From Bugula neritina (lineage: Eukaryota; Animalia; Bryozoa), in the NCBI GenBank assembly GCA_964035545.1, contig OZ037770.1, forward strand, positions 12,142,642-12,206,641: a stretch of 64,000 bases of DNA, written 5' to 3'. The notes under the pieces were generated by a model that saw nothing but the letters and a program-made list of their open reading frames with translations, had not been told where the DNA came from and made no database searches. Shown piece by piece: positions 1 through 62,257 of this stretch; position 1 is the stretch's first letter, and every line of letters starts with the position of its first letter. Both the position numbers and the translations under genes were made by a program.

Positions 1-20428
<20,428 letters not shown>

Positions 20429-35961: not shown

Positions 35962-37323
35962 ATGGCTATACGAGGAATAAAGCTAAAGTTTTTCAAGCAC
36001 TGTATCTACCTGGTGATATACTCCCTGTTTCGTTGCTGCCAGTTGATCTCCTGGTGGCTAACAGGAATTCAGAGTCACCTGAAGAGCTGCCGGAATGGAA
36101 AGAATTATGAGTCGTCTGCGCAGCTACTTAAAGTTTGGTTTCACTCATCTGGAAGAATAATCAATTTCAGTCTACGACATCATTTCCTGTCTACTCATGT
36201 AAACTTTGTTCATCCAACTTATGCTCTACAGAAACACATCACATTAATGACAGTAACTGACAAAGAAGCTATCTTTAGTATTCAAGGCGAATGTGATGAT
36301 GTTTTAAATGTTAGAAAATGGCCATTTTTGAATGTAGGACATCCAACAACAGCTAAACATCTTCTCATCATGCCCATAAGTTCCATGATCAAACTTGGTG
36401 AAGAGTTGGGAGACCCAAAAGCTAAAGTGATTTGGATTTATCACACTGCAAGATGTGGATCCACAGCTATGTCTCAGGTCTTCAATTCTCTACCAGATGT
36501 TGTATCAATATCTGAACCAAACTGTCTGTTTTCCCTGGACATGGCCTTTAAAGAAAAGTACTTTGAAAAAAAGAAAGGTTCATGGATTACTTCTGATGAA
36601 TATCAGCAAATCTATAAAAATGCTGTTAGATTGTTGGTAAAGCCCTACAAAAGAGATGCTAATGTTTTTGCTGTGAGGTCCCATGGATATGCATCAAAAG
36701 CAGATCTTCATTTGATACCAAAACTGTTTCCACAGTTTATTGGAATATTCATGTACCGAAATGTGAAAGAGGCAGCCATCTCTTTAACCAGGGTGTCACA
36801 GGGCATTTACCTGCATGGAGATTGTGCTTTAGCTGTCATTAAAACCCCCATTCTTTCACTTCTTTTTTCAAATCTACGCCCGTCAAATCTGCTATACTGT
36901 AGCTGTAGTGAACCAAAACATTTGGAGTGGCTGTTTAAACGAGAGAACATCGTAAAAAGCTGTAACTTTATTAACTCTGTGATACAATTTGCTGGAGCAT
37001 GTTTCCATTACAAAGATGTGGTGGCTAAAGGTTTACCAGTTGTGGCAGTTAAATACGAACATCTACAAGAAGACAAAATGAGGTTATTTAAAATCTTATT
37101 TGAACATGTAGGATTAGAGATGACATCAGAGAGAGAAAGATTAATCCATCAAGCCTTGAGTGAAGACAGTCAGAAGGGAACCGATGCTGATAAAAAGGTC
37201 ATGGCAAGCGTTAAGGCTGACGTAGCACAAGAGATGATAGATGAAGCTAACTACTTTCTAAGATACTACCGTCTACCAAACTGGGGGGAAGATATACTTC
37301 TACCTAAAACACTAGGATACTAA
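35962..37323 (+). CDS. Sulfotransferase-fold protein, copy 1 (453 aa, intronless CDS)
   Basis: 5'-PSB-like loop WIYHTARCGSTAMSQVF, RSH (KTH-like catalytic His motif), 3'-PB-like FMYRN...IS, VKYEHL, C-terminal DSQKGT. Hydrophobic N-terminal segment. Splice acceptor cag 2 nt upstream of the ATG. Confidence 0.9.
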   Translation: MAIRGIKLKFFKHCIYLVIYSLFRCCQLISWWLTGIQSHLKSCRNGKNYESSAQLLKVWFHSSGRIINFSLRHHFLSTHVNFVHPTYALQKHITLMTVTDKEAIFSIQGECDDVLNVRKWPFLNVGHPTTAKHLLIMPISSMIKLGEELGDPKAKVIWIYHTARCGSTAMSQVFNSLPDVVSISEPNCLFSLDMAFKEKYFEKKKGSWITSDEYQQIYKNAVRLLVKPYKRDANVFAVRSHGYASKADLHLIPKLFPQFIGIFMYRNVKEAAISLTRVSQGIYLHGDCALAVIKTPILSLLFSNLRPSNLLYCSCSEPKHLEWLFKRENIVKSCNFINSVIQFAGACFHYKDVVAKGLPVVAVKYEHLQEDKMRLFKILFEHVGLEMTSERERLIHQALSEDSQKGTDADKKVMASVKADVAQEMIDEANYFLRYYRLPNWGEDILLPKTLGY

Positions 37324-37510
37324 TCTGTAGGGGAATTGTACCAGAATTTAGGACAACAAAATCGTATGGAAATAAAATTTAATTCTGTGAAATAGAAGTA
37401 AATTGTTACAAATTATTATATCGAGAAACTAATATTAATATACTAGCTTGGATACTGATTTGTAAAAGACTAAATCAAACATAAAAAATAACCTAACATA
37501 TTGTGACAAT

Positions 37511-38018
37511 CACTGCGTTTCCATCATTACATTATGCAATGGATTTTTCATTTGGTGTTTGGAAATGAGTTGGAATGAAGTCACAACCATATATAGGTTC
37601 ATTGAAACCGCAACCACAAGTTAATCTGTAAGCCTAGGGCCACACTGTGCGTATTTTCGCATGCGAAAATTGAAATCACAAGTAGCAAAGGTGTCCACTG
37701 TGCGCGTTGTGAAAACATTCGCACTTGTCGCTCTGCATTTTCAACGCAAGTGCGAATCGTCTCTGTCATCGTCACCTAATTGGCTGGTAGTTATTCAGCG
37801 AGCCCAATTTCTTTATTTAGTGTTATATTCCAGTAAATTGCGTTTTATTGAAAGCGCGTACGATTTAAAAATGAAAGCTTTATTTATCACGCATCACTGA
37901 CGCTACAGTGGACACCTTTGCTACTTGTGATTTTAATTTTCGCATGCGAAAATGCGCACAGTGTGGCCCTAGGCTAAGAGAATCTAATTGCATAATGCAC
38001 GGTAGTGGATATGCAGTG
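37511..38018. mobile_element. CACTG-ended MITE (CMC/EnSpm-like), interrupted by the Harbinger MITE
   Basis: Ends CACTGCGTTTCCA / TGGATATGCAGTG with 3-bp TSD AAT. Confidence 0.65.
37632..37974. mobile_element. PIF/Harbinger (Tourist-like) MITE, copy B, nested in a CACTG-ended MITE
   Basis: Near-identical to 34239-34582, same orientation, TAA TSD. Confidence 0.88.
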
Positions 38019-38393
38019 AATGGGGTACTTTCTTTGATTGTTTTAGTTAGATAGTTACTGATATGCTAATACTAATGTAGAACCTATAAACAAACATACA
38101 GCTTATTGTATTTAGTTTTTGGAGAACATATAACTGTAATAACATACTTATTATATTATGTGGTTTATTTTCTAGAATTCATATACTTTTTCATATAAAA
38201 TAACTGTAACGTGTTAACAATATATTATACTACAATTTAATAGTTTGCACATGAAGTATTAACTGAAATAACATCAACTATCACTATAGCAGTTCTATAC
38301 CTTCTCGTCTTATCTTCTTTAACTTGGGCTTTACATTTCAACACTCTAAAGTTACACACACACCCACACATTATATAAGTAAATGAATAAACA

Positions 38394-38398
<5 letters not shown>

Positions 38399-38474
<76 letters not shown>
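38399..38474. repeat. (TA)n microsatellite
   Basis: Pure TA run. Confidence 0.95.
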
Positions 38475-38477
<3 letters not shown>

Positions 38478-39379
38478 TATCAAAATAACCTGACCAAGCT
38501 ATACAAGTTTATAGCCAAGTTTTATAAATCATTCAAGCAGTAGAAACTTATTATAGCAGCTGAATCCACTTCATTTTTGTTTAAGCACTTATTAAATAAC
38601 ATCAAAAAGTCACACTTCATAAAATTTAAAAAATGATAGAAGCCAAGCATTTTAAAACATAAAAAACTTTACTACTATTGCACAATAATATAAAATTGAA
38701 TTTTACCGAAGGGTACATATGTTCAGCCTTATACATGTTTAGAACCAAGATTATTTATTAACCACTGAATATATTTTAAGCATTGTTCACATTTGGCTAT
38801 CCTTACCTAAAGTAAAGGCTGACCTTTACAATTACTTTGTGCACTGACTGTATAGATGTAGTTGACCAACTTTTGAAACATTCCTAAACAGTATGCATCA
38901 AAGCAATCGGGTATGCATTACAGTGTCATCATGATGAATAGAACCTAATCTCATGTTTCAATCTTGTAACCGGGGTATCCGGGTGCCTATTTTATTAATA
39001 GCATGCAAATGTGTTATATGAAAGAATCAGTGCAAACCAGAAGAATATTAATTTGCATTGTCTTAGAGTAATGCAAAACTAGCATCCGGCATTACAGCTT
39101 TTCTCGAAGGGGTTCAAGTCAAACATATTAAATTAAACTAATATAAGTGATAGTTGGAAACTTTTAGCTTAGTAGGGTTCCAATAAATTATAATCAAATA
39201 GGCAGAAAATTTGCCAAGTTGATTAGATGCAAAATATCTGTGTAAAGGCTGTTTAAAAAGTTCTAGCAGTTAACTAGCTCTCTACCTTATATAATAATGT
39301 ACTCAGCAAATCTTAGCAAACCCTGTTGAAGCCCCTGTAAGCTTCAACAAAATTAATTTGAAACAAGTTATTATAAGTT

Positions 39380-39560
39380 ATGGAGCAGGCGTTAGAGCAC
39401 CTGCTCAGGGAGCAAAAAATCAGTAGTTTGAATCCAAGATAGAGGATAGAGGCTATTTGCGATGTCATTATAGGAAGAGATTCAGTCATATATTGCTCTC
39501 TTTTGCCACGTTAGAAACAGTTTAAAAACCTTTTTTCAAAGGGTGGAATATGTAAAATCC
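39380..39560 (+). mobile_element. Degraded tRNA-derived SINE copy
   Basis: ggagcag...ttagagcac...gtttgaatcc...aggaagagattcagtcata. Confidence 0.55.
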
Positions 39561-40946
39561 ACAACAAAAGTGTACATATTAATTTATAAGTTAAGTGCTA
39601 TGCATGTTGTAAACTATGAAGATTTAATAAATATAATAATATACTATTATAGTAGCATTGAAAAGTGGCGGGTCTGCCATAACGCTATATATAATAGCTA
39701 GTTGTTACAATGCTATATATAGCTATATATAGCTACATTGAGCTTTGTGCTTCAAATATGACACTCTGCAACAAGTGGTTATGAATTCAGCATGTTATGT
39801 AACACAACTTTTATTAGAAAAGTAGAGATCAAAGCTTAAACAATCACTTGTAGTCTTCAGACTCTTTTGTCCCAGGAGCAAGTTTTAGAAATTTTGATGG
39901 AAGTGCAGCTTTCTATAGCTATAATACAAAACATTTACGTAGCAAAAAATGACTTGTATATAAAAATTTGTCAAATTGTAAAAGCACTTAAATGTTGGTT
40001 TTCTTTCGTAAATACATGAAAGTTGGCTGGGTTTTGCGACCCTCCTAAAGATGGCTGGGTATATATATTGTAGCTGCTCTAAGGATACCAGGCTATTGTG
40101 ATTAAAGCTGGCGGGCTTTTTGTAACCACAACTAGGCAAGCATGGGTTTTACAATCATGAAATTATAGCTTTATATATTGTGCAATTAAATTTGCATATT
40201 GCATGTTAAATCCGTTTGCAGCATGTTGTGAATTTAAATCTCAGGTTCCACACTATTGAGTAACGGGCTCTAAGTCTATAAAATGTGACAAAGCGTGGGA
40301 TGAATACGGGTTATTCATTAATACTGTTATTTATGGGTCTGATTAGCTACATAAATTATCTGTCCACTAGTTTACTATATGCATGCCTTGTTATATAAAC
40401 TCGGTGTTATAAAACCTGCTAAATTCAGCCTATCACAATAAAGGTCTTAATATGTGACACCAGCATACCAGCAATCATATCTACAATCATCATTCTATTA
40501 TTATTTATTGTATACCAGTGTTTTGTCTTGAATTTCTGAATGAATGGGCCATATCATATTACAGTGTATAAAAAAATGTTTGAATGCTAGTGTTTTATAT
40601 GTGGGGGTTGAAATAAATTGCAAACAAAATACAAATTTATATAACCCAAATTTTCATGAAGGTATTTGAATTCTCACTCAGTTGAATAACTAGAAATGGA
40701 AATCTTTAGATACAATTTTGTAACGGCCACGGGATATTGTTGGAAGAGTCAGTAAAATCCAAGTTCTATACTTCAAAATAATTATGTTAATTCAACTAAT
40801 TATAATATATATTATATACTGCGCAGTGTTGATAGAAATAGTAATAAAATTATAGTATTTTAGGAAAGCCAAATCATACTAGTGTAAAGCAATCTATAAT
40901 GGACTAATAGCTTTTATAACTTTTCATTATAAGATATTTTTGTAGT

Positions 40947-41075
40947 AAGAGCAGCTGCGTGGTCTAGGATTTAGAGCACCGGTTTAGTAAATCTGAGGTC
41001 ATGGGTTGGACCTGGTAAAGACCATTGGTGATGTTAGAAAAAGCATTTAATCCCGTGCCACATGTATATGAATAA
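40947..41075 (+). mobile_element. tRNA-derived SINE copy (3' truncated)
   Basis: agagcagctgcgtggtctaggatttagagcac...ccattggtgatgttagaaaaagcat. Confidence 0.65.
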
Positions 41076-41207
41076 TTCTCCTTCGCATGCTTTAATGCAC
41101 ATTTCCAAGAGTTTGATGATCCCTTTGAAATTTAATGCATAAATAATTATGTGTGCAATGAGCCAAAACCGCAGTGGGTTCCACTTCAGTGGGTGCTTGC
41201 ATATGTT

Positions 41208-41385
41208 GACCTGTGAGGAACCCCTGGTGGAAGGGGTTTTTGTTAAAGCGGGCTAAGGACTTATTCATATGTGGTACAGGAGAAATTATGATTGTATGCT
41301 CTTCCTAACATCACTAATGGCCTTTGTCAGAGCTCGAACCCATGACTTCGTGCTTACTAGACAAATGTTCTTATAGCCCCTAGAG
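41208..41385 (-). mobile_element. tRNA-derived SINE copy
   Basis: Same family, tail-to-tail with the 40947 copy. Confidence 0.75.
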
Positions 41386-41566
41386 TCTAGAGTCTAGACT
41401 CTAGACAAGTGACTGAGGGGCTGACCATAATAAAAACCCCTTGGAAACATAAAGAGGAAAACAGTCTACAGTAGAAGTATTTTAGGGAAAAGTTTGAAGA
41501 ATACAAAAACCAGACAAACCCCAGACAAAAACTATAGTTGTCTATATGTTGAATCACCCATTTAGG

Positions 41567-41669
41567 TGCAGTAGTGGAGAAATTCTAAAAGCCTAAGTTC
41601 TTTAATTTTGGTTTGCATGGGTCATGGATTGAAATTCTCATAACTTTTGCTACATTTCTCCATTACTGC
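41567..41669. mobile_element. Short MITE-like element
   Basis: TGCAGTAGTGGAGAAAT ... ATTTCTCCATTACTGCA inverted termini. Confidence 0.45.
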
Positions 41670-43123
41670 ATCTACTTCATCAAACTGCCTTGAAGTTTTA
41701 GACTAAGAATTTATATAGTAAGGCCTAACGCAGTTGATATTTTATTTAGATAATATACAAACTATATCATATATAATGCAAAACATACAATTATCAACCA
41801 TACATGCATGGAATGTAGTAGTCACAAATTTGCAAATGGTATAAAACGCACATCAATTTTAAAGACACCTTTCATAAACTTCTGTTGTTTAGTGAAATGT
41901 ACTGTGCAGTTTTGACAAAATATTGACAAAAGAATACGTTTGAGATTTTTTATATTAAAATAATAATATTTTATATTTTCCTGGCATTTTCATAACTGAA
42001 ACTTTTTAGATACTAATTTTCTAAAAAAAACATTTTTCGTTTTAGCTGATAAAAATCACAATTGTTAATGCAGTAGTTTATGAAGCTGAACGTATTCTGA
42101 GCTCCTGCCTAAAGGTATTATTAGATAGACCAGACTGACTAGACTAGCTGTAGTTGGGTGGTAATTTGATTTTACTTTATGTATAATAGTTATTAGATGT
42201 TCAGATAAGACTCAAACTGGGATTCATGCAGCGATTTGCCACGCATTATTATATTTCACAGGAGTTCAACGCCCACTGAAAGCTATAAAATAATAACTCG
42301 GTCTTTTGACATAATTATAACCGGATAGACACTGCGATTAGCTTAATATTGAGTCCTGGAAGATTAGAACAAAGATTACTAAAAGAAGTACCAATTTAGA
42401 GTTGAATGAGTGCATTAATTTGGGGTCAAAGGATTGGACACCGACGACGTGTATACTAATACTGTACTCAGTCACTCCAATGGAGTGCTGCTTCTAACAA
42501 TAATATTCTGACGGACCAATAGAAAATAATTTATGTAATAATGGACACCATAAATAACGGTGTTAGTGCCGCATTTGTCACATTATATAGACTTAGAGTC
42601 TCGCATTCGTAGTTGAAGAACTTCGTACGATAATTCGGTCACAAAATACTCCGAAGGCCACTACACAATATGCAAATTAGTTGCAAAATAAATAATATAT
42701 TGCGATTTTAAAACCCAATTGCTGAATTGTGGTTACAAAAGCCGGTCAACCATAATATACAGTTTGTTGATCAGACTGTTAAGGTTTTTCTATCAACTTT
42801 TTAAGACCCTTTGCACTCGGTGACCCAAAGCTCTTTCCAGCCCATACAGTGGTATAAAGCATAATAAGGGCTTTCACAGGCTGTAAAAACTTTTAGTATT
42901 ACTTAAATATTTTAGTTATAGTTGATATATTACGTATTCAATTATAATAACTGTTGACTTTTTATGAGACCTACCAACTTTAAACTATATGAATTTGAAT
43001 TAGGAGAAGATCTTCGGAGTATAATGTTGAAACCAGTTACCAGGAGAAAAACAAGAACGTAATATACTAAGCTATACTGGGAATAATAGAATTGGTTATA
43101 TGGTATCATTCCAGATAGATGAC

Positions 43124-43178
43124 TTCCAGTTAGACGACCAAATTCTAGTTAGACGACTAAATTCTAGTTAGACGACCC
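43124..43178. repeat. 19-bp x3 tandem repeat
   Basis: Units ttctagttagacgacYaaa. Confidence 0.8.
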
Positions 43179-44157
43179 CAAATACACTGTTACATGGCTC
43201 CACTCAGACACCTGTGCAGATGGATTTACATATCTTGCCTTGATCATCACAAGCTGTATTGACTTAATTCAATTAATTATGTAATTTATCAATCTGTGCC
43301 AGCTGTGATGGATACATTTAATGTGATAATTGATTTTATGTAATACCTATATATGAACAATGTAATTGGTTTTCTTTTTCATGTGAACATGGCTTCAAAA
43401 CTCTACAATAAATAAATAATGGCTTAGAAGTTTACAATCTTAGGCTCTATATTAAACATAAAGCCAAATAAATCTGCAACTTAGTATCAAATACCGTTAT
43501 TTTTTAAAAGTCCCTATAATGCTTTTTAAATAAAGTCATCTAAATAAAAGTTGCCTATCTGGACTGAAACCGTTCATATAGTTTTCGTGTTATGCTATAA
43601 CTTATAATATTATATAGTTATTACATAATGGTCTATAAGTGTTATGTGAGACAAATAGATAGCTTCTTTAAGGAAAAGTATAGTGTGATATGAAATTGAA
43701 ATAAAGTTGCAAGTTTTTCAAAAGATAGTGTTTGTTTAGTAATGATATTATTATAATCATGCAGAGAAAAGAAAATATCTCATTAACATGATGTTGTCAT
43801 AAAAATGAATACCTAAGCAATTTTTTCTCAAATCATTTGTGGTATTTGATAATAATACTTTATATAAACCTTTTGCAAGATATTTTACTCTACTTATAGG
43901 ATTTAAGCCACAGGCCTGTTGTCTTGCAAACTGATGCACTATAAACCATCACACCACATATACTGATAGTCTTTTCCGCCTTTCTTTGATCATTTCTATT
44001 AATCAGTCAGTTATAATATTCGACGTGCAAAGAAACCAACACATTTGCCTCTAACATTAAGTCGTCTACAGAATATTATATCATGAGCAAAAAGCTATAA
44101 ATGCTCTTGACTATCATATGGCATATTTACTATAGAAAACATACATTTGATATTGTA

Positions 44158-44375
44158 AGGAGCAGCTGTGGTCTAGGGGTTAGAGCATTTGCTTAGTGAA
44201 CACGGACGTCATGGGTTCAAACCCGAGTAAAGCCCATTTATGATATTGGAAAGAGCATCCAGTCATAATTGCTATTGTGCCTCCTTTAAATAAGTCCTTA
44301 GCCCGCTTTAGCAAAAACTCTTTCCACCAGGGGTTTCTCACAGGGATGGTGACTATAAATTTGTGTGAGTTGTTC
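44158..44375 (+). mobile_element. tRNA-derived SINE (one of the most complete copies)
   Basis: A-box TGGTCTAGGGG, B-box GGTTCAAACC, and a body with GGAAAGAGCATCCAGTCATAATT...AATAAGTCCTTAGCCCGCTTT...CCACCAGGGG. At least 8 copies in the window. Confidence 0.8.
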
Positions 44376-47020: not shown

Positions 47021-48382
47021 TTAGTACTGAAGTGTTTTAGGTAGAACTATAGCTTCACCCCAGTCTGGTAAACCATAGTATCTTAGAAAGTAGTTAGCTT
47101 CATCTATCATCTCTTGTGTTACATTAGTCTTAACGCTTGCCATGACCTTTTTATCAGCATCGGTTCCTTTCTGACTGTCTTCACTCAAGGCTTGATTTAT
47201 TAACCTTTCTCTCTCTGATGTCATCTCTAATCCGGCATGTTCAAATAAGATTTTAAATAACCTCGTTTTGTCTTCTTGTAGATGTTCGTATTTAACTGCC
47301 ACAACTGGTAAGCCTTTAGCCACCACATCTTTGTAATGAAAACACGCTCCTGAGAATTGTATCACAGCATTGATAAAGTCACAGCTTTTTATTATGTTCT
47401 CTTGTTTAAACAGCCACTCCAGATGTTTTGGTTCACTACAGCTAGAGGATAACAGGTTTGATGGGCGTAAATTTGGAAAAAGAAGTGAAAGAATAGGATG
47501 TTTGATGACAGCTAAAGCACATTCTCCATGAAGGAATATACCCTGTGTCATACGAGTTAAAGAGATGGCTTGTTCTTTCACATTCCGATACATGAATATT
47601 CCAATAAACTGTGGAAACAGTTTTGGTATCAAATGAAGATCTGCTTTTGATGCGTATCCATGGGACCTCACAGCAAAAACATTAGCATCTCTTTTATAGG
47701 GCTTTACCAACAACCTAACAGCATTTTTATAGATTTGCTGATATTCATCAGAAGTAATCCATGAACCTTTCTTTTTTTCAAAGTACTTTTCTTTAAAGGC
47801 CATGTCTAGGGAAAACAGACAGTTTGGTTCAGATATTGATACAACATCTGGTAGAGAATTAAAAACCTGAGACATAGCTGTGGATCCACATCTGGCAGTG
47901 TGATAAATCCAAATCACTTTAGCTTTTGGGTCTCCCAACTCTTCACCAAGTTTGATCATGGAGTTTATGGGCAAGATGAGAAGATGTTTAGCTGTTGTTG
48001 GATGTCCTACATTTAAAAATGGCCATTTTCTAACATTTAAAACATCATCACATTCGCCTTGAATACTAAAGATAGCTTCTGTATCAGTTACTGTCATTAA
48101 TGTGATGTGTTTCCGTAGAGCATAAGTTGGATGAACAAAATTTACATGAGTGGACAGGAAGTGATGTCGTAGACTGAAATTGAGGAGTCTTCCAGATGAG
48201 TGAAACCAAACTCTGAGCAGCTGAGCAGATGACTCATAATTCTCTCCATTCCGGCAGCTCCTCAGGTGACTCTGGACTCCTGTCAGCCACCAGGAGATCA
48301 ACTGGCAGCAACGAAACAGCGAGTATATCACCAGGTAGATACAGTGCTTGAAGAACATCAGTGTTATTTCTTTTGTAGCCAT
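47021..48382 (-). CDS. Sulfotransferase-fold protein, copy 2 (453 aa)
   Basis: Same motifs and length as copy 1, in inverted orientation. tag|ctATG acceptor context. Confidence 0.9.
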   Translation of the reverse strand: MATKEITLMFFKHCIYLVIYSLFRCCQLISWWLTGVQSHLRSCRNGENYESSAQLLRVWFHSSGRLLNFSLRHHFLSTHVNFVHPTYALRKHITLMTVTDTEAIFSIQGECDDVLNVRKWPFLNVGHPTTAKHLLILPINSMIKLGEELGDPKAKVIWIYHTARCGSTAMSQVFNSLPDVVSISEPNCLFSLDMAFKEKYFEKKKGSWITSDEYQQIYKNAVRLLVKPYKRDANVFAVRSHGYASKADLHLIPKLFPQFIGIFMYRNVKEQAISLTRMTQGIFLHGECALAVIKHPILSLLFPNLRPSNLLSSSCSEPKHLEWLFKQENIIKSCDFINAVIQFSGACFHYKDVVAKGLPVVAVKYEHLQEDKTRLFKILFEHAGLEMTSERERLINQALSEDSQKGTDADKKVMASVKTNVTQEMIDEANYFLRYYGLPDWGEAIVLPKTLQY

Positions 48383-49134: not shown

Positions 49135-50206
49135 ATTGGCACGGGCTGCTTAGCTTGGCTACGAGATAACTCCAGCTTCTGTCAGTCTGCAGTAGGGGGT
49201 AGAATTAGGACCCCTGGTTAAGGTATTCGTCTGGTGGTGTTCCGCAGTCTAGGATCCTGGGTTTTCACTCACTTTAATACACCTTGACTGTTCTTGCTAG
49301 TTCCTTCAGTGACCCTTCTGACTTGAAACACATCTGTCCTGGTCTGGATGGTATTTAGGAGTGCCAATTGGATGTTTCAGTAGCCCCGCCTTCTGCCAAG
49401 CAGCATATCTGGGACATTAGAGATCAGCTGTATAATTGTCAAGGTGTGTAGTCAAGGCAGCAGCTCCATATAATATAGTTATACAAGAGCTGCAACACTG
49501 ATTAGCCAATAATACATATAGCCAAATCATACATGTTACCATTCATATATAAGGAGTGCTGCAGTCCACAACCGTTACCAAAAGATTGTACGCGAGTTAT
49601 TTAAGTATGTCTTGAGTCATTGGGCTTTATGCTGGGTTGTGCATAGATCAATATAGTTATAAATATTCTAAATATGTGTGGCATTAATGTGGTACCAGTT
49701 TCAATAATGTTAATATAAGATATTATTAAATGTATGCAGGCAATGGATTCCTCTACTTGTTAAGTTACTGATCGCAATACCAAGCACCTACCTCAAGAGA
49801 ACAGCTGGTAGTAATGTCTGTGCAGTTATCCCATAGGTGTATGTCACAGTGTATAACATGTATATAACATTAGCATTCAGTTTCTCAGTGAGTTTGACTA
49901 AGAATATGAAGTTAGAAAATTCTGGATATAACAATAGCCTTAAACTTAAGCAGATTAACATCAAAGAGGAATATTATATTGGGTTGGATCATGGGAACAC
50001 AACTTCATGCTGCTAATTTTTTTAATCATCTCTTTCTTAAACAGTCCTGCATTTTTTCACAACTTTAGATAGTTTTACTATGCGTATCTATTTTATTTGT
50101 TTACTAGCTTGGGCAAATAGTTTATAATAAAAAATGTAGATTCCAAAAGTTATCTATATCTGTTGAAAAGCACAAAGATGAAAGCAAAGTCTTTTTGTTT
50201 CTCTGT

Positions 50207-50405
50207 TTATAAACAGTCACTCCAGATGTCTTGGTTCACTACAGTTACAGGGTAACAGATTTGATGGATGTACATTTGGTAAAAGAAATGAAAGAAGGAG
50301 GTTTTTAATGACAGCTATAAAGCACATTCTCTATGAAGAAATATACCCTGTGTCACAGGAGTTAAAGAGATGACCTGTTCCTTCACATTTCGATACATAA
50401 ATATT
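50207..50405 (-). pseudogene. Internal fragment of a sixth sulfotransferase copy
   Basis: Aligns by eye to about 47405-47600 (YRNVKEQ...SEPxHLEW region). Carries a 2-nt insertion (gctataaagcac vs gctaaagcac) and substitutions, and is truncated on both sides. Confidence 0.85.
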
Positions 50406-50964
50406 GTTACAATTACCGCATGAGACATCATTTGTGTCTCAAATTTCCTGAAACTATGTTTTTTTTTAACGCAAAATATTTACTCAAATAATGGCATGGC
50501 TTGTACCCAATTATTTGTAGCATTGAATAATACTGTCTAATGCTTTAATTTATAAACTACTACAACAGATTAAGGTTAACTATACCTTTCATTGCAGTGT
50601 AAGATAACTTGCTTGACATCATTGTGGATAATTTTTTATGTATCTTATTGCAAGGATCTGTTTCGTGTGCTCATATTTAAACTCATTAATCTGACAGTTC
50701 TAGGTCAGTGAAAATAAAGATAAGCAAATATTCATATTCTCAATGAAAATCAGGAAATTTAGATAGCGATGTTTCTCCATTACCACGTACCTAACTGTCC
50801 TAAATAAGATATTATTACTTTATTCAATTGCTAGCCTAAGTTTATACTGTGTTCCCATAACCCCGTTGTGATGGAATTATGGACTTTGGGTTTATTCAAT
50901 TCAAATTTCATATTCTCATCTCGTTGAGGCCATACCCTTATTTCCTAAGTTTCTGAAAAATAAT

Positions 50965-51036: not shown

Positions 51037-51051
51037 ACTGGGTAAACTCTT

Positions 51052-51213: not shown

Positions 51214-51444
51214 ATATGGAGATGCAGCCACCCTTGTAAATACAGCAACCTATCCTGAGCTAGCTGACTGGACCTAACCGACAAGAAGTCTTACTGCACC
51301 CAACAGCTATCAGAAACTACTTCTCTGCAAGATCCAATATCAGGTAGACGTACCAAAACGAGAGGAGTCATCTACAAGGTAATTACCATTAAGTATATGC
51401 ATATGATACTGTTATAGTAAACAACTAAGTGCTTAGCTATATTA

Positions 51445-51475
51445 CACTATGTTTCCATGTCATGGAAATGCAGTG
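51445..51475. mobile_element. 31-bp TIR-only derivative of the CACTG MITE
   Basis: CACTATGTTTCCATGTCATGGAAATGCAGTG flanked by TTA on both sides. Confidence 0.55.
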
Positions 51476-51747
51476 TTAGTAGAGTAAAGTCGATACCCCA
51501 ATTTCACGATACAACAAAATCGAATTGATTTGTGGTTGCTTTTTTCATTAACTTGTTGTGGTTGTATTCGATTGACCCCATGCATCAAATGAAAAATCCA
51601 TTCTCGAAGTATGAGTATGCAGTGTATGACAATCAAATAAGGAAACACTATTCTCTTGGCTGCACTTGACAATGTGACTTTTACTCAACCCTCAAAAGTT
51701 GGTTATATTTGATTAAATTATAATGAAGATTTACTTTTATTATAGCT

Positions 51748-53109
51748 ATGGCTAAAAGAGAAATAACACTGATGTTCTTCAAGCACTGCATCTACCTGGT
51801 GATATACTCGCTGTTTCGTTGCTGCCAGTTTATCTCCTGGTGGCTGACAGGAGTTCAGAGTTACCTCAAGAGCTGCCAAAATGGAGAGAATTATGAGTCG
51901 TCTGCTCAGTTACTTAAAGTTTGGTTCAGATCATCTGGAAGGTTTCTTAATTTCAGTCTACGACATCACTTCCTGTCTACTCACGTAAAGTTTGTTCATC
52001 CAACTTATGCTCTACAGAAACACATCACATTAATGACCGTAACTGATACAGAAGCTATCTTTAGTATCTCTGATGAAAGCGAAGATGTATTTAATGTCAG
52101 AAAATGGCCATTTCTGTCTTTAGCTCAACTCCCAACAGCCAAATATCTTCTCATCATGCCTATAAGTTCCATGGTCAAACTTGGTGAAGAGTTGGGAGAC
52201 CCAAAAGCTAAAGTGATATGGATTTATCATGCTGGTAGATGTGGATCCACAGCTATGTCTCAGGTTTTCAATTCTCTACCAGATGCTGTGTCAATATCTG
52301 AACCAAACTGTCTGCTTTCCCTAGACATGGCGTTTAAAGAAAGGTACTTTAAAGAAAAGAACAGCTCATGGATTACTTCTGATGAATATCAACAGATCTA
52401 TAGAAACGCTGTCAGGCTGTTGGTAAAGCCCTACAAAAGAGATGCAAATATTTTTGCTGTGAAGTCTCATGGATATGCATCAAAAGCAGATCTTCATTTG
52501 ATACCAAAACTGTTTCCACAGTTTATTGGAATATTCATGTATCGAAATATGAAAGAACAGGTAATCTCTGTAACTCGTGTGACACAGGGTATATTCCTTC
52601 ATGGAGAATGTGCTTTAGCTGTCATTAAACATCCCATTCTTTCACTTCTTTTACCAAATATGCGTCCATCAAGTTTGCTACACTGTAGCTGTAGTGAACC
52701 AAAACATCTGGAGTGGCTGTTTAAACGGGAGAACATGGTGAAAAGTTGTGACTTCATCAATGCTGTGATACAGTTTGCTGGAACATGCTTCCATTACAAA
52801 GATGTGGTGGCCGAAGATTTACCAGTTGTTGCAGTTAAATACGAGCATCTTCAAGAAGACCAAACAAAGTTTTTTGAAATGATATTCAAACATGTTGAAT
52901 TGGAGATGACATCAGAGAGAAGAAAGTTGATTGACTATGCTCTGAGCGAAGACAGTCAGAAAGGCACCCCAGTTAATAAAAAGGCCATGGCAAGTGTTAA
53001 GACTGAAGTAACACAAGCAATGATAGATGAAGCTAACTACTTTCTAAAACACTATAGTCTACCAGACTGGGGTGAAGATATACTTCTACCTAAAACACTT
53101 GAGTACTGA
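51748..53109 (+). CDS. Sulfotransferase-fold protein, copy 3 (453 aa, divergent active-site motifs)
   Basis: HAGRCGST, VKSH, YRNMKEQVIS, VKYEHL, DSQKGT. No indels relative to the other copies. Confidence 0.9.
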   Translation: MAKREITLMFFKHCIYLVIYSLFRCCQFISWWLTGVQSYLKSCQNGENYESSAQLLKVWFRSSGRFLNFSLRHHFLSTHVKFVHPTYALQKHITLMTVTDTEAIFSISDESEDVFNVRKWPFLSLAQLPTAKYLLIMPISSMVKLGEELGDPKAKVIWIYHAGRCGSTAMSQVFNSLPDAVSISEPNCLLSLDMAFKERYFKEKNSSWITSDEYQQIYRNAVRLLVKPYKRDANIFAVKSHGYASKADLHLIPKLFPQFIGIFMYRNMKEQVISVTRVTQGIFLHGECALAVIKHPILSLLLPNMRPSSLLHCSCSEPKHLEWLFKRENMVKSCDFINAVIQFAGTCFHYKDVVAEDLPVVAVKYEHLQEDQTKFFEMIFKHVELEMTSERRKLIDYALSEDSQKGTPVNKKAMASVKTEVTQAMIDEANYFLKHYSLPDWGEDILLPKTLEY

Positions 53110-54064: not shown

Positions 54065-54237
54065 AGCAGACTTTGAGAACTTCAGCCTGGATACATTAAA
54101 AACGGCCTAAGTTACGGCATTTGCTCTTATACACACATCCATTATACATGCATAAGCTACAAAACGACGTCCAAACCCTTCTCGCGAACTATGAAATTTC
54201 GTGAGAACTAGAGCCATGAGATATGGAAGAAGCACTG
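54065..54237. mobile_element. Right end of a related Tc1/mariner-type element
   Basis: Ends GAGATATGGAAGAAGCACTG|TA, with an interior similar to 29260-29369. Confidence 0.5.
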
Positions 54238-56119
54238 TAAAATATGAAAATTGAAATCTTCTTTTAGTTTTCCAACAGAATAAACTATTGCAAATTTGGC
54301 TTTTCCTTTCTTTGGCCATTCCTACTCACTCATTATTATTTGACCTACAAAGAAATCAAAACATGTATTTCTATACTACTGCTAAGTGCTAAGTAGCTTA
54401 CAGAATATCATATTACTGTTGAAAAGTTAAAGACACTCTTGCCTATTATATGGCACATTCACTATATAGTTAAGTGTTGAGGAGCATGCAATTGATATTG
54501 TATGTGTTAATGCTATATTTTATGTCAAACATGATGTCAGGAAAAGCACTTGATCATAATGACCTTCATGTGTCACAGTAACAGCCCTCAAGCAAGGTTA
54601 AGCCATGGGCCCAGCCCTTAGTACCCTTAAAAAGGCTGTCATAGGACCTAAAAGCCAAGGCGAGTTTTGGTTTACAGTAATGGAGACAGACAGAGGGTAG
54701 ACAACTGCTGAATTATATTCAAAGTAGGTAGGAATTGCCTCCTTCTGTTAGTTACTCACCAAACTTAAACCCGTTCATCCTAAAGTGAGCAATGAGCAGT
54801 TTGATTGCTATATATATACACACCATGTTGAAAAATGGCTCCTCTGATTTCTCGTACTTTCTACCTTCTAAACTTCTCCATAGTCTTTCGAGAAGTACCG
54901 ACCTCGCCATATTATAAATATTCTAGTAGATGGATGTTGATACAAGTCAAGATGCTGCTTCTTATGAAAACAATTGAATAAACTAAATGTTTCTATTGTG
55001 TTGATTTCCTTTGTCGTTCTTAAGGTGAAATATGAATTGCATTGTTGAAATAATATTGTTTTCAAAATCATATTTATTCAATATTATTATTACATTAAGT
55101 TGTGCACTAACATAATATACTAATTCTAATAATAGTGCTGAGCTTATACAATTTTTTTGAGTTATATCAATTATTATTTTTCTAATCTTATATTAAATAA
55201 GTTGATATCTCTTTTGCATAAATAAAACTAGAATTTATATTGCATATTATATCTATACATCTAACATAGTTACAAAAACTTGTGCATTTATTCACTTTTG
55301 AAAATAAAATTCTTTCTTTTAAATAATATGCTATAGAATATATTATTTTGTAGTTTTTCTGACATCAAGACACATAAAGTATATGAGTGCATATTTTATC
55401 TTGACATGGCTTTTGCATTAGCAAGAAAACCTATTACACTATATAATATCAATAAAGAAGATAACAGCTATTCAAGAGTTTGCAATAGAATGATTTATTT
55501 TTATTCTAGTAATCTCTGTGGACAAGAGTAAAATAATGTAGATTAAAGGGAAGCAGCTAAAATTTTATGAATGAGAGGTTTACACTTTAGCTTGACATAA
55601 TGTTATACATTTTGACAATATACTATATTATTATGGACACATTAAATGAAACTCTAAACAATTACAATTAAACAAACTACTTGTTTACTGAATTCTAGAC
55701 AGTTGATTCTACAACAGCTTTTACAAAAGTCAAAGACTTTAACCTTTCATTTTATTACTTATAAAGAAGTCTTTCTTCAAAAAATTCCTACATCTCTGCT
55801 TTTTCACACCTTTTTCAAATCCAAAATTTTTAGCATAAATTATTTGTCAAAACTATATCAAACAAATAAGCAAAATATGCATATTTATATAAAATTATAT
55901 AGTATAAATAATTTATAAAATAGAGTTATCTCCTTCCTTCTAAAAATCTCTCCCACAACTGTTTCAAAATTCAGTGGTGTAGAGTTGTGTTCTCCACATT
56001 CAACTTCCCACAGCTTTTCAATACACTTGAGTTCGCCTTTTAGTTGTGGTTAGTTTTGACTTTTCAAAATACTTAATCAAGCGACCTGTCATTGGATAGA
56101 GATAGGAGGCAGTGTCCAT

Positions 56120-56298
56120 GTGTTATAAACTACTACAACAGATTTAAGGTTAACTACCATTCATTGCAGTGAAAGATAACTTGCTCGACATCGTTCTAAA
56201 TAAGCCCCCTATGTATCTTATTGCAAGTGGCTGTTTCGCATGCTCGTATTTAAACTCATCAATCTGACAGTACCAGGTCAGTGAAAATAAAGGTAAGC
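56120..56298 (+). promoter_or_regulatory. Putative promoter + non-coding 5'-UTR exon of copy 4
   Basis: TATA-like ttataaa at about 56123, an Inr-like tcatt about 35 nt downstream, donor AAG|GTAAGC at 56293, and an acceptor just before the ATG. The block recurs upstream of copies 2 (inverted), 3 and 5. Confidence 0.55.
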
Positions 56299-56667
56299 AA
56301 ATATTCATATTCTCAATAAAAATTAGGAAATTTAGATAGTGATGTTTCTCCATTACCCACCTAACTGTCCTAAATCAGTAAATGAGCTGTTGTTACTTTA
56401 TTCAATCGCTAGCCTAAGTTTATCCTGTGTTCCCATAAGATCGGATGGATTTTTGGTTAATTTTTCATTAACTTATTGTGGTTTTATTCGATTGACCCCA
56501 TGCATCAAATAAAAAATCCATTCTCGAAGTATGAGTATGCAGTGTATGACAATCAAATAAGGAAACACTATTTTCTTAGCCATATTTGACAATGTGACTT
56601 TTACTCAACCCTCAACAGTTGGTTGCATTTGATTAAATTATGACGAAAATTTACTTTTAATATAGCT

Positions 56668-58029
56668 ATGGCTACACGAGAAATAACACTGATGTTCTTC
56701 AAGCACTGCATCTACCTGGTAATATACTCTCTGTTTCGTTGCTGCCAGTTGGTCTCCTGGTGGCTGACAGGAGTTCAGAGTCACTTGAAGAGCTGCCGAA
56801 ATAGAGAGAGTTTTGAGTCGTCTGCTCAGTTACTTAAAGTTTGGTTTCATTCATCTGGAAGACTCCTTAATTTCAGTCTACGGCATCACTTCCTGTCCAC
56901 TCATGTAAACTTTGTTCATCCAACTTATGCTTTACAGAAACCTATTACATTAATGACAGTAACTGATACAGAAGCTATCTTTAGTATTCAAGGTGAATGT
57001 GATGATGTTTTAAATGTTAGAAAATGGCCATTTTTAAATGTAGGACATCCAACAACAGCTAAAAATCTTCTCATCATGCCCATAAACTCCATGATCAAAC
57101 TTGGTGAAGAGTTGGGAGACCCAAAAGCTAAAGTGATTTGGATTTACCACACTGCAAGATGTGGATCTACAGCTATGTCTCAGGTTTTCAATTCTCTGCC
57201 AGATGTTGTGTCAATATCTGAACCAAACTGTCTGTTTTCCTTAGACAAGGCGTTTAAAGAAAAATACTTTAAAGTGAAGAAAGGTGCATGGATTACGTCT
57301 GCTAAGTATCAACAGATCTATAGAAACGCTGTCAGGCTGTTGGTAAAGCCATATAAAAGAGATGCTAATGTTGTTGCTGTGAGGTCCCATGGATATGCAA
57401 CAAAAGCAGATCTTCATTTGATACCAAAACTCTTTCCACAGTTTATTGGAATATTCATGTATCGAAATGTAAAAGAACAAGCCATCTCTTTAACTCGTGT
57501 GACACAGGGTATATTTCTTCATGGAGAATGTGCTTTAGCTGTCATTAAAAACCCCATTCTTTCACTTCTTTTTCCAAATTTACGCCCATCAAACCTGTTA
57601 TCCTGTAGCTGTAGTGAACCAAGACATCTTGAGTGGCTGTTTAAACGAGAGAACATAATAAAAAACTGTGACTTCACCAATGCTGTGATACAATTCTCTG
57701 AAGCGTGTTTCCATTACAAAGATGTGGTGGCTGAAGGTCTACCAGTTGTGGCAGCTAAATACGAACATTTCCAAAAAGACCAAATGAAGTTTTTTGAGAT
57801 GATATTCAATCATGTAGGATTAGAAATGACATCAGAGAGAAGAAAGTTGGTTGACTATGCTCTGAGTGAAGACAGTCAGAAGGGTACCCCGGCTGATAAG
57901 AAACTCTTTGCTGACGTTAAGACTGAAGTAACACAAGCAATGATAGATGAAGCAAATTACTTTCTAAGATACTATGGTCTACCGGACTGGGCTGAAGATA
58001 TACTTCTACCTAAAACACTTGAGTACTAA
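56668..58029 (+). CDS. Sulfotransferase-fold protein, copy 4 (453 aa)
   Basis: Same motifs. First member of the tandem pair with a 4228-bp offset. Confidence 0.9.
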   Translation: MATREITLMFFKHCIYLVIYSLFRCCQLVSWWLTGVQSHLKSCRNRESFESSAQLLKVWFHSSGRLLNFSLRHHFLSTHVNFVHPTYALQKPITLMTVTDTEAIFSIQGECDDVLNVRKWPFLNVGHPTTAKNLLIMPINSMIKLGEELGDPKAKVIWIYHTARCGSTAMSQVFNSLPDVVSISEPNCLFSLDKAFKEKYFKVKKGAWITSAKYQQIYRNAVRLLVKPYKRDANVVAVRSHGYATKADLHLIPKLFPQFIGIFMYRNVKEQAISLTRVTQGIFLHGECALAVIKNPILSLLFPNLRPSNLLSCSCSEPRHLEWLFKRENIIKNCDFTNAVIQFSEACFHYKDVVAEGLPVVAAKYEHFQKDQMKFFEMIFNHVGLEMTSERRKLVDYALSEDSQKGTPADKKLFADVKTEVTQAMIDEANYFLRYYGLPDWAEDILLPKTLEY

Positions 58030-58845
58030 TCTGTAGAAGATTTGTATACCAGAATTTAGGACTACATGATTGTATGAGAATAGAATAATCCCCCTAATAG
58101 ATAGTTACCAATACTAATAGTAATATACATTTGAAAAACTAACGAAACATGTACAGCCTACTGTATTTCATTTTCATATATCTATATTATACTCATTTTA
58201 TTGTGTGGTTTATATTTTAGAATTTATATACTTATCTAATGTAAAATATCTATTACGTAATAGCAATACATTATATTATAATTCTATAGCTTGTAAATGA
58301 ATGGTTAGCGCAATAAAATCAACTATCGCTAGCAGTACTACCTTCTCGTCTTTTCTTCTTTAACTTGGGCTTAGCAGTTCACCACTCTAAAGTTACACAC
58401 ATGCACGCAACAGAATGCATGAGGTTTATTATATCAAAATATTATATTATTATAGTGTTTCGAAAAGAGCAACTTCTGTTTTAGCCGATGGTAATTACAA
58501 CTGTTAATGCAGCAGTAAATGAAGTTGCACATATTTTGAGCTCTTGACTAAAAGTATTATTATATAGACTAAACTGGCTGTTATAGGTAGGTAGAAATTT
58601 TGACTTTACTTTACTAGCCACACTTTGCTATAACATTGGCCGTAACAGAAAAGCTCTGAGCTTGTTGTACGATGTTACAGTACGTCAGGATCAAGCACGA
58701 TTTGTTTAAAAAAAGTTGTGTCGGCTCCTACTGGACAGGGAGACATCTGCGACAACTCATTGGATATAAATCTCCAATGAAGTGTCATAGATCGTACCAA
58801 ATAGCGCACTTGGAGAACTTTAGCCTGGATACGGTAAAAATAGAT

Positions 58846-59490
58846 ATAGATATAATATGCAATATAAATTCTATAGTTTTATTTATGCAAAACAGATATC
58901 AACTAATATATAATATATTATTAGAAAAAACAATTTGTATAACTTAACAAAATTGTATACGCTCAGTGCTATTATATGAACTGATATATTATGCTTATAT
59001 TGTGCAACATGATATTATATAATATAGAAATATAATGTGATATTATTATTCTTATATATAAGAATAATAATATCACATTATATTTCTCGCACTTTCTACC
59101 TTCTAAACTTTTCCATAGTCTTTTGAGAAGTACCGACCTCGCCATATTATAAATATTATAGTAGATGGATGTGGATACAAGTCAATATATACTGTTTCTT
59201 ATGGACACAGTTGAATAAACTAAATGTTTCTACTGTGTTGTTTTCCATTGTTGTTCTTGAAGTGAAATATGAATCGCATTGTTGAAATAATATTGTTGTC
59301 ACAATTATATTTATTTAACATTATTATTATATTAAGTTGTGCACTAACATAATATACTAGTTCTAATAATAGTACTGAGTGTATACAATTTTGTTAAGTT
59401 ATATAAATATTATTATTTTCTAATCTAATAGTAAATAAGTTGATATTTCTTTTGCATAAACAAAACTATAGAATTTATATTGCGTATTAG
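58846..59490. repeat. AT-rich foldback: ~160-bp imperfect inverted arms enclosing a perfect 62-bp palindrome (59026-59087)
   Basis: 58846-59010 is the reverse complement of about 59330-59490. AGAAATATAATGTGATATTATTATTCTTATA|TATAAGAATAATAATATCACATTATATTTCT is a perfect palindrome. Confidence 0.8.
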
Positions 59491-60347
59491 GTTTATACAA
59501 AAACGTGTATATTTATTCACTTTTGAAAATAAAATTCTTTTTGTTTAAATAATATGTTATAGAATATATTATTTTGGAGTTTTTCTGACTTCAAGACACA
59601 TAAAGTATATGGGTGCATAATTTATTTTGACATGGCTTTTGCATTAGCAAGAAAAACCATTACACCATATACTATCAATGAAGAAAATAACAGCTATTCA
59701 AGAGTTTGCAAAAGTATAATTTATTTTTATTTTAGTAATCTCTGTAGAAAAGGGTAAAATAATGTAGATTAAAGGGAAGCAGCTAAAATTTTATGAATGA
59801 GAGGTTTACACTTTAGCTTGACATAATGTTATACATTTTGACAATATACTATATTATTATGGACACATTAAATGAAACTCTAAACAATTACAATTAAACA
59901 AACTACTTGTTTACTGAATTCTAGACAGTTGATTCTACAACAGCTTTTACAAAAGTCAAAGACTTTAACCTTTCATTTTATTACTTATATAAAGAAGTCT
60001 TTCTTCAAAAAATTCCTACATCTCTGCTTTTTCACACCTTTTTCAAATCCAAAATTTTTAGCATAAATTATTTGTCAAAACTATATCAAACAAATAAGCA
60101 AAATATGTATATTTATATAAAATTATATAGTATAAATAATTTATAAAATAGAGTTATCTCCTTCCTTCTAAAAATCTCTCCCACAACTGTTTCAAAATTC
60201 AGTGGTGTAGAGTTGTGTTCTCCACATTCAACTTCCCACAGCTTTTCAATACACTTGAGTTCGCCTTTTAGTTGTGGTTAGTTTTGACTTTTCAAAATAC
60301 TTAATCAAGCGACCTGTCATTGGATAGAGATAGGAGGCAGTGTCCAT

Positions 60348-60526
60348 GTGTTATAAACTACTACAACAGATTTAAGGTTAACTACCATTCATTGCAGTGA
60401 AAGATAACTTGCTCGACATCGTTCTAAATAAGCCCCCTATGTATCTTATTGCAAGTGGCTGTTTCGCATGCTCGTATTTAAACTCATCAATCTGACAGTA
60501 CCAGGTCAGTGAAAATAAAGGTAAGC
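60348..60526 (+). promoter_or_regulatory. Putative promoter + 5'-UTR exon of copy 5
   Basis: Identical to 56120-56298, with donor GT at 60521-60522. Confidence 0.55.
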
Positions 60527-60895
60527 AAATATTCATATTCTCAATAAAAATTAGGAAATTTAGATAGTGATGTTTCTCCATTACCCACCTAACTGTCCTA
60601 AATCAGTAAATGAGCTGTTGTTACTTTATTCAATCGCTAGCCTAAGTTTATCCTGTGTTCCCATAAGATCGGATGGATTTTTGGTTAATTTTTCATTAAC
60701 TTAATGCGGTTTTATTCGATTGACCCCATGCATCAAATGAAAAATCCATTCTCAAAGTATGAGTATGCAGTGTATGACAATCAAATAAGGAAACACTATT
60801 TTCTTAGCCATATTTGACAATGTGACTTTTACTCAACCCTCAACAGTTGGTTGCATTTGATTAAATTATGACGAAAATTTACTTTTAATATAGCT

Positions 60896-62257
60896 ATGGC
60901 TACACGAGAAATAACACTGATGTTCTTCAAGCACTGCATCTACCTGGTAATATACTCTCTGTTTCGTTGCTGCCAGTTGGTCTCCTGGTGGCTGACAGGA
61001 GTTCAGAGTCACTTGAAGAGCTGCCGAAATAGAGAGAGTTTTGAGTCGTCTGCTCAGTTACTTAAAGTTTGGTTTCATTCATCTGGAAGACTCCTTAATT
61101 TCAGTCTACGGCATCACTTCCTGTCTACTCATGTAAACTTTGTTCATCCAACTTATGCTCTACAGAAACACATCACATTAATGACAGTAACTGATACAGA
61201 AGCTATCTTTAGTATTAAAGGTGAATGTGATGATGTTTTAAATGTTAGAAAATGGCCATTTTTAAATGTAGGACATCCAACAACAGCTAAAAATCTTCTC
61301 ATCATGCCCATAAACTCCATGATTAAACTTGGTGAAGAGTTGGGAGACCCAAAAGCTAAAGTGATTTGGATTTACCACACTGCAAGATGTGGATCTACAG
61401 CTATGTCTCAGGTTTTCAATTCTCTGCCAGATGTTGTGTCAATATCTGAACCAAACTGTCTGTTTTCCTTAGACAAGGCGTTTAAAGAAAAATACTTTAA
61501 AGTGAAGAAAGGTGCATGGATTACGTCTGCTAAGTATCAACAGATCTATAGAAATGCTGTCAGGCTGTTGGTAAAGCCATATAAAAGAGATGCTAATGTC
61601 TTTGCTGTGAGGTCCCATGGATATGCAACAAAAGCAGATCTTCATTTGATACCAAAACTCTTTCCACAGTTTATTGGAATATTCATGTATCGAAATGTAA
61701 AAGAACAAGCCATCTCTTTAACTCGTGTGACACAGGGTATATTTCTTCATGGAGAATGTGCTTTAGCTGTCATTAAAAACCCCATTCTTTCACTTCTTTT
61801 TCCAAATCTACGCCCATCAAACCTGTTATCCTGTAGCTGTAGTGAACCAAGACATCTTGAGTGGCTGTTTAAACGAGAGAACATAATAAAAAGCTGTGAC
61901 TTCACCAATGCTGTGATACAATTCTCAGGAGCGTGTTTCCATTACAAAGATGTGGTGGCTGAAGGTTTACCAGTTGTGGCAGCTAAATACGAACATTTCC
62001 AAAAAGACCAAATAAAGTTTTTTGAAATGATATTCAATCATGTAGGATTAGAAATGACATCAGAGAGAAGAAAGTTGATTGACTATGCTCTGAGTGAAGA
62101 CAGTCAGAAGGGCACCCCAGCTGATCAGACAATCATTGCTGATGTTAGGACTGAAATAACACCAGCAATGATAGATGAAGCTAACTACTTTCTAAGATAC
62201 TATGGTTTACCAAACTGGGGTGAAGCTATACTTCTACCTAAAACACTTGAGTACTGA
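60896..62257 (+). CDS. Sulfotransferase-fold protein, copy 5 (453 aa)
   Basis: Near-identical to copy 4 except scattered changes and the C-terminal ~45 aa. Confidence 0.9.
   Translation: MATREITLMFFKHCIYLVIYSLFRCCQLVSWWLTGVQSHLKSCRNRESFESSAQLLKVWFHSSGRLLNFSLRHHFLSTHVNFVHPTYALQKHITLMTVTDTEAIFSIKGECDDVLNVRKWPFLNVGHPTTAKNLLIMPINSMIKLGEELGDPKAKVIWIYHTARCGSTAMSQVFNSLPDVVSISEPNCLFSLDKAFKEKYFKVKKGAWITSAKYQQIYRNAVRLLVKPYKRDANVFAVRSHGYATKADLHLIPKLFPQFIGIFMYRNVKEQAISLTRVTQGIFLHGECALAVIKNPILSLLFPNLRPSNLLSCSCSEPRHLEWLFKRENIIKSCDFTNAVIQFSGACFHYKDVVAEGLPVVAAKYEHFQKDQIKFFEMIFNHVGLEMTSERRKLIDYALSEDSQKGTPADQTIIADVRTEITPAMIDEANYFLRYYGLPNWGEAILLPKTLEY

Follow-up and report, generated by a model that had tools for sequence, protein, structure and literature searches.

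Described enzymes with the sulfotransferase fold that use 3'-phosphoadenosine 5'-phosphosulfate (PAPS) include the protein-tyrosine sulfotransferases TPST1 and TPST2 (PDB 5wri, 5wrj, 3ap1-3; tick TPST, 8w5z), the soluble mycobacterial proteins Stf9 and Stf1 (2z6v, 2zq5), the sulfotransferase domains of CurM and of olefin synthase (OLS; 4gbm, 4gox), and the cytosolic SULTs such as SULT1A1 and SULT1E1. Experiments on TPST2 support Arg78, Glu99 and Lys158 as its catalytic residues (PMC10951654). Here we describe a related group of genes in a bryozoan. The window analysed is a stretch of 64,000 nucleotides (C6:12142642-12206641) of the 216-Mb Bugula neritina assembly GCA_964035545.1, which is AT-rich (GC 27-40%), without N, and contains exactly five open reading frames (ORFs) of 453 aa, named ST1-ST5. 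From sequence comparison and structure modelling we consider it likely that the five are functional paralogues which, with a relic, make up an old and conserved array, and that they belong to a PAPS-dependent sulfotransferase family without a studied member.

The coding sequences (CDSs) of ST1-ST5 are single exons (Table 1) and align codon for codon without a gap, with identities of 86-97% in nucleotides and 81-96% in protein. Between positions 30000 and 64000 the ORF listing holds no further ORF of at least 150 aa, which excludes chance as the source of five such frames. The original prediction had described five 453-aa ORFs in +,-,+,+,+ orientation, free of indels and stops, and a sixth fragment; both the listing and the alignment agree with it. 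ST4 and ST5 are the closest pair and still differ at 2.6% of CDS bases.

Table 1 Features of the sulfotransferase array and its flanks, in positions of the window
Feature	Position	Strand	Remarks
Putative 3' splice site	35949..35961	+	T-rich tract, TAYAG, CT, then the ST1 ATG
ST1	35962..37323	+	Intact single-exon CDS, 453 aa; best counterpart EB796_010878 (96% aa)
Miniature inverted-repeat transposable element (MITE)	37626..37980	.	~350 bp, terminal inverted repeats ~75 bp; second copy at 34236-34585; the pair brackets ST1
ST2	47021..48382	-	Intact CDS, 453 aa; orthologue EB796_022264 (92% aa; dS 0.31, dN/dS 0.11)
Relic of sixth copy	~50121..50410	-	aa ~260-351, two frames, frameshift-broken
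Interspersed repeat resembling a long terminal repeat (LTR)	51214..51445	.	230 bp, within a 655-bp insertion upstream of ST3; single copy here
ST3	51748..53109	+	Intact CDS, 453 aa; sister to the other four
Upstream block of ST4 unit	54753..56667	+	Repeated at 59066-60895 before ST5
ST4	56668..58029	+	Intact CDS, 453 aa; ~4.2-kb tandem unit in common with ST5
ST5	60896..62257	+	Intact CDS, 453 aa; 96% aa identity to ST4, dS 0.064

Searches of PDB sequences with a single sequence or with 13 sequences gave nothing meaningful. A profile of 58 family sequences (alignment A2, also the basis of the second AlphaFold2 model) was needed, and it retrieved TPST1 (E 4.4e-12) and the CurM sulfotransferase domain (2.4e-7). 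The first AlphaFold2 model, built on the 13 sequences, had a mean predicted local distance difference test score (pLDDT) of 76 and matched only PAPS sulfotransferases, TPST1 at Z 16.5. The model from A2 reached a pLDDT of 94.7 and a predicted template-modelling score of 0.93. When 48,161 PDB chains were searched without bias, ranks 1-18 were all PAPS sulfotransferases (Z 10.3-14.7), with Stf9 first (14.7) and TPST1 (13.6), tick TPST (13.6), the OLS domain (13.3), TPST2 (13.3) and Stf1 (12.5) among them; P-loop kinases, expected in such a search because the sulfotransferase fold (alpha/beta with a central parallel sheet) is related to theirs, appeared only from rank 19 (Z <=10.2), interspersed with more sulfotransferases. 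Foldseek and the first model agree with this assignment. The sulfotransferase fold, proposed originally from the letters of the sequence, has thus held up against structure prediction and structure search. That residues ~150-450 form a catalytic domain with this fold, most like the TPSTs and the Stf1/Stf9/CurM-type enzymes, is well supported by the predicted structure.

By sequence profile the closest solved relatives are TPST1 and TPST2. The likeness extends over an alpha/beta core of ~230 aligned residues (Z 13.3-16.5) and includes the loop for binding of the 5'-phosphosulfate (5'-PSB loop), an Arg-Glu spacing of 21 residues, an Arg and a Ser 8 residues apart for the 3'-phosphate, matches to PF13469 on both sides, and a common 'YE.L' strand (KYEDL in the window family, HYEQL in TPST1). 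However, identity is only 10-14%, the window family adds a conserved N-terminal module of ~100 residues and a DSQKG(T/S) motif near the C-terminus, and its membrane topology may be opposite. Stf9, the best match in the unbiased structure search (232 residues aligned), has a similar overall length. The Stf1 alignment spans residues 13-445 and that of an actinobacterial Atlas cluster 55-446 (TM 0.81), so that part of the N-terminal region is common to the window family and the bacterial enzymes; these differ in a marginal profile match (E 0.02-0.04), in being soluble and in lacking the N-terminal hydrophobic helix. The CurM and OLS domains (profile E 2e-7 and 4e-5, Z 13.3-14.8) activate a beta-hydroxyl for decarboxylative elimination as parts of polyketide synthases, whereas the window proteins stand alone. 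The cytosolic SULTs share the superfamily fold (Z ~11-12) and the PAPS motifs. The window proteins are ~150 residues longer and have a hydrophobic N-terminus, and where the SULTs use a His the family conserves only the neighbouring Lys, with a conserved Glu base instead; membership in the SULT family failed on this point (H241 is unconserved) and on the PF00685 scores given below.

The genome carries its own canonical TPST gene at C1:8328616-8329993 (+), in three coding pieces or exons that match PF13469 above the cut-off, the middle one at E 5e-32 against human TPST1. The window family is consequently a separate branch, and it falls outside the TPST family proper by sequence identity, while the Arg/Glu/Lys catalytic residues are present. 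The array could nevertheless encode extra TPST-like enzymes that work in the Golgi lumen and sulfate tyrosines of membrane or secreted proteins. The closeness of TPST1/2 by profile (E 4e-12) and structure, the common catalytic arrangement and a hydrophobic N-terminal helix that could serve as a type II anchor would suit such enzymes, but the low identity, the resident TPST gene on C1, an N-terminal beta module without a TPST counterpart, a single universal sequon (N68) and a charge balance favouring a cytosolic catalytic domain make this reading unlikely.

The residues expected to bind PAPS are in place. R164-C-G-S-T168, the predicted 5'-phosphosulfate loop, is present in all five copies, fits the strand-loop-helix signature (K/R)xGxT(T/S) of the superfamily and aligns to PRSGTT of TPST1. 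None of the 58 sequences departs from G166 or R266, and at least 90% keep each of R164, S167, T168, E185, K239, Y265, S274, E366 and D402; ST1-ST5 retain them all apart from position 239, discussed below. In the profile alignment with TPST1, R164 falls on the TPST Arg and E185 follows 21 residues on, as Glu99 follows Arg78 in TPST2, and R266 and S274 fall on the RD...S 3'-phosphate motif, in which the Ser likewise stands 8 residues after the Arg. The PAPS-binding motifs first noticed in the sequence (the 5'-loop and R266...S274) are therefore recognisable as intact, family-conserved and aligned to TPST1, and setting the SULT YPKSGT beside ARCGST is sound as far as the 5'-PSB loop is concerned. 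The catalytic His read into a (K/R)(T/S)H motif fared otherwise: H241 occurs in all five copies, yet it lies outside the conserved columns of the family. Because H241 is not conserved, while E185 is and aligns to the TPST Glu, catalysis by a Glu base, as in TPST, appears likelier than catalysis by a His, as in the cytosolic SULTs. In such a mechanism, the loop R164-C-G-S-T would hold the 5'-phosphosulfate of PAPS, and R266 and S274 its 3'-phosphate; Glu185 would deprotonate the acceptor hydroxyl, and Arg164 together with Lys/Arg239 would stabilise the sulfuryl group in transfer, as in TPST. The position of the DSQKGT motif (residues 402-407, of which D402 is family-conserved) suggests a contact with the cofactor.

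Several observations weigh against this assignment. Every single copy scores below the curated Pfam cut-offs: 14-20 bits against PF13469 (Sulfotransfer_3; cut-off 27) and 16-21 bits against PF00685 (maximum 20.8; cut-off 22), with no match to the latter for two copies; NCBIfam gave no match for the window proteins. Among the 58 family members, 51 match PF13469 at E <=0.01 (best 1.4e-13), and by score the window proteins are divergent relatives of PF13469, not formal members. Position 239 is Lys only in ST3 and Arg in the other four copies against the Lys of the family, and K239 itself sits one residue off TPST Lys158, beside an alignment gap. In addition, an exact-protein look-up returned no transcript contigs for ST1 or ST3.

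Pairwise dN/dS among ST1-ST5 is 0.18-0.28 over dS 0.06-0.41, in keeping with the purifying selection that had been claimed for the cluster. By region the ratio is 0.16-0.34, and in the catalytic core (residues 151-270) it is 0.08-0.16 over most of the length, with one window at 0.24. Positive selection was ruled out, as no 30-codon window exceeds 0.49. These values also bear on whether the proteins are catalytically dead, either as PAPS-binding or scaffold proteins or as non-functional copies before decay. The Arg at position 239 of four copies could be taken as a sign of this; every other motif residue is intact in all five, however, the core is the constrained region just described, and the frames have stayed open across the full range of paralogue dS and in the sister lineage, so that we regard loss of catalysis as very improbable and continue to treat the five genes as functional.

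The family-specific N-terminal module would consist of a hydrophobic helix, the putative anchor, followed by a small beta-sheet ahead of the catalytic domain. In the model the elements before the core are helices at 2-34, 36-44, 123-130 and 139-149 and strands at 53-61, 75-83, 93-98, 102-108 and 131-138, the first core strand being 155-161; family-conserved positions in this part include SAQ at 52-54, F75, F105 and P138. The N-terminal extension of ~150 aa noted at the outset is indeed present relative to SULTs, but it is better described as a family-wide conserved module that opens with a hydrophobic helix. That helix varies in sequence and keeps its hydrophobicity: the median of the best 19-residue Kyte-Doolittle values (KD19) is 1.66, and 31 of 56 members reach at least 1.6. 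It begins nearly at the N-terminus, usually with more Lys/Arg after it than before. Helix 2-34 is thus probably a membrane anchor, and by the positive-inside rule the charge balance leans towards a cytosolic catalytic domain. Only N68 is a sequon in all five copies; two copies have one more each. The anchor has its own difficulties: in ST1-ST5 the hydrophobicity of the helix is no more than moderate (KD19 1.41-1.44) and its pLDDT in the model is very high, so that it may pack on the protein core instead of crossing a membrane.

One bryozoan, Watersipora cucullata, is known to contain ceramide 1-sulfates (PMC6722838). We venture, as a distinctly speculative proposal, that ST1-ST5 might be enzymes of the cytosolic face of the endoplasmic reticulum (ER), held by an anchor like that of microsomal P450s, that would sulfate lipophilic acceptors, ceramides for example; the beta module would form a channel for the lipid acceptor, and acceptor specificity would differ between paralogues. 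If true, ER-tethered lipid sulfotransferases would be a new functional class of animal sulfotransferase across many invertebrate phyla.

The best matches outside the assembly are Bugula neritina proteins at 90-96% identity. Against B. neritina GCA_010799875.2, orthologue dS is 0.23-0.31 and the intergenic DNA is 66-87% identical and largely collinear, which indicates that the two assemblies represent diverged lineages. Contig VXIV02003231.1 of that assembly carries, in the order and orientation of the window, EB796_022264 (ST2), the relic fragment at the matching relative place, the ST3 orthologue (a 454-aa gene adjoining EB796_022264; 91% aa, dS 0.23) and the start of a further copy. By gene number and sequence EB796_022266 and EB796_022267 correspond to the ST4/ST5 pair, the placement of 022267 on the contig coming from its gene number, and the ST1 counterpart EB796_010878 lies on another contig. 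Each of ST1-ST5 has its own best counterpart, and in the tree EB796_022264 nests within the ST1-5 clade. The presence of a counterpart for every gene, the collinear relic and the orthologue dS together imply that the array predates the split of the lineages. In the VXIV02003231.1 stretch used for the comparison, the orthologues of ST3 and ST4 are separated by ~6.3 kb (13195-19548 of that stretch) that is absent from the window.

ST4 and ST5 are closer to one another than to 022266/022267, which suggests gene conversion or parallel duplication. Upstream in their units, 300 nt (55760-56059 and 59988-60287) are 100% identical, set against the 2.6% divergence of the CDSs; this intergenic stretch suggests recent gene conversion.

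By these comparisons the array is old and conserved and is not freshly expanding, so that the expansion by birth and death put forward in the original prediction is not supported for a cluster whose relic, too, is common to both lineages. In its full form that proposal was of a lineage-specific locus, still expanding, that would sulfate small metabolites, pigments or xenobiotics for chemical defence. It draws on the wider copy number in this genome (29 matches, of which ~17 are intact copies in a single exon, seven of these in another cluster 0.5 Mb away), on the ceramide 1-sulfates of Watersipora, where a homologue exists, and on the short N-terminal hydrophobic helix followed by more positive charge, which would suit a membrane-tethered enzyme with lipophilic acceptors. 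Against it, there has been no recent gain, except possibly of ST4/ST5, no window of the genes has dN/dS >1, and no biosynthetic partners were seen in the rest of the window, a probable exon of a transporter gene being the sole recognisable neighbour. We find this account doubtful, and a role in chemical defence is speculation. In the account favoured here, the array arose when segments of DNA were duplicated, ahead of the divergence from the sequenced B. neritina lineage; purifying selection has kept it since, mobile elements inserted later, and ST4 and ST5 probably underwent some gene conversion.

Flanking DNA is consistent with this. ST3-ST5 have up to 1.7 kb of upstream DNA in common, and ST2 has a weaker piece; across ST2-ST5 the identity is 74-93%. 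The upstream block of the ST4 unit is partly present before ST3 (50550-50860 and 51516-51747) and also precedes the B. neritina ST3 orthologue. Repetition of this block shows duplication at the DNA level. Of the claim that the flanks are rearranged and full of transposable elements (TEs), only part holds: the flanks do carry the MITE pair and the LTR-like repeat, but there are no long TE ORFs in the flanks and the intergenic DNA is largely collinear between lineages. An origin of the copies as assembly artefacts, mobile-element cargo or retrocopies could be imagined for intronless multi-copy genes beside MITEs, the more so as similarity between ST1 and ST2 stops within ~15 nt of the CDS. We consider it extremely improbable: the copies are 2.6-14% apart in nucleotides and have counterparts of their own within collinear intergenic DNA in B. 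neritina, the upstream DNA of ST2-ST5 is alike, no TE ORFs occur, and the family is conserved across animal phyla. Assembly duplication was ruled out by the inter-copy divergence and the one-to-one best counterparts, and a retrocopy or TE-cargo origin by the common upstream DNA and the interspecies collinearity.

Relatives of ST1-ST5 are widespread among animals. A word-index protein search with a single sequence or an alignment gave 10 close relatives only, and an exhaustive hidden Markov model search was then used, which returned 1372 cluster representatives at E <=1e-3 and 146 at <=1e-30. Most representatives are 410-490 aa long, and their match covers almost all of the profile, N-terminus included. 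The members with a name belong to bryozoans, nemerteans, molluscs, annelids and copepods (Watersipora, Lineus, Haliotis, Mytilus, Elysia, Plakobranchus, Capitella, Paralvinella and Tigriopus), and each carries the label 'uncharacterized', 'hypothetical' or 'Sulfotransferase domain-containing'. No characterised member came up in the literature, and for none has the function been studied or the structure solved, so the description of a poorly characterised family was apt. Beside the cytosolic SULTs and the TPST and carbohydrate enzymes of the Golgi, the family forms a third, distinct kind of animal sulfotransferase, which has an N-terminal module of its own. The many intact copies in Bugula offer a convenient system for a substrate search, with any sulfated lipids or metabolites that bryozoans have as obvious candidates. 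The outcome is no surprise, but it soundly annotates an enzyme family that is still uncharacterised. In the Atlas search, clusters from nematodes, amphioxus and diatoms also appeared, as leads only.

Elsewhere in the genome, intact copies occur as the second cluster of seven on C6 and as singletons on C1, C2, C6 and C9, besides several broken copies. The second cluster (C6:12664335-12719439, ~0.46-0.51 Mb past the window) comprises seven intact paralogues and a fragment in mixed orientation, at 63-67% aa identity to ST1; four are near-identical young copies. Its B. neritina counterparts are EB796_008369, 008370 and 008177. Copies with in-frame stops or splits at C8:4761945-4763288, C2:2841116-2845954 and C3:19002292-19004197 are likely pseudogenes; at the C2 site several pieces of family copies lie near one another.

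A T-rich tract ending in TAYAG 2 bases before the ATG is found in all five copies and in two B. neritina orthologues, and it is kept in ST1 although that copy has lost other upstream similarity. The second cluster has a Kozak-like GCACC in its place. The tract is probably the 3' splice site of an intron in the 5' untranslated region. For a paralogue, a Logan contig (SRR4020084) runs collinear with genomic DNA and is hence uninformative on splicing, and JGI contigs that include P0003 yielded no sign of expression.

Upstream of the array, a 134-aa ORF at 25994-26398 (-) matches Pfam MFS_1 at E 6e-7, below the cut-off, and probably represents one exon of a gene for a major-facilitator transporter. 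The MITE that brackets ST1 had 5932 candidates in the genome at first look, and scoring of 40 gave 96-98% identity, with all chromosomes represented; judged by these copies, the element is very young and very abundant. Genomic copies of the repeat at 51214-51445 are often paired, ~6.4-6.7 kb apart, and resemble the LTRs of a retrotransposon.

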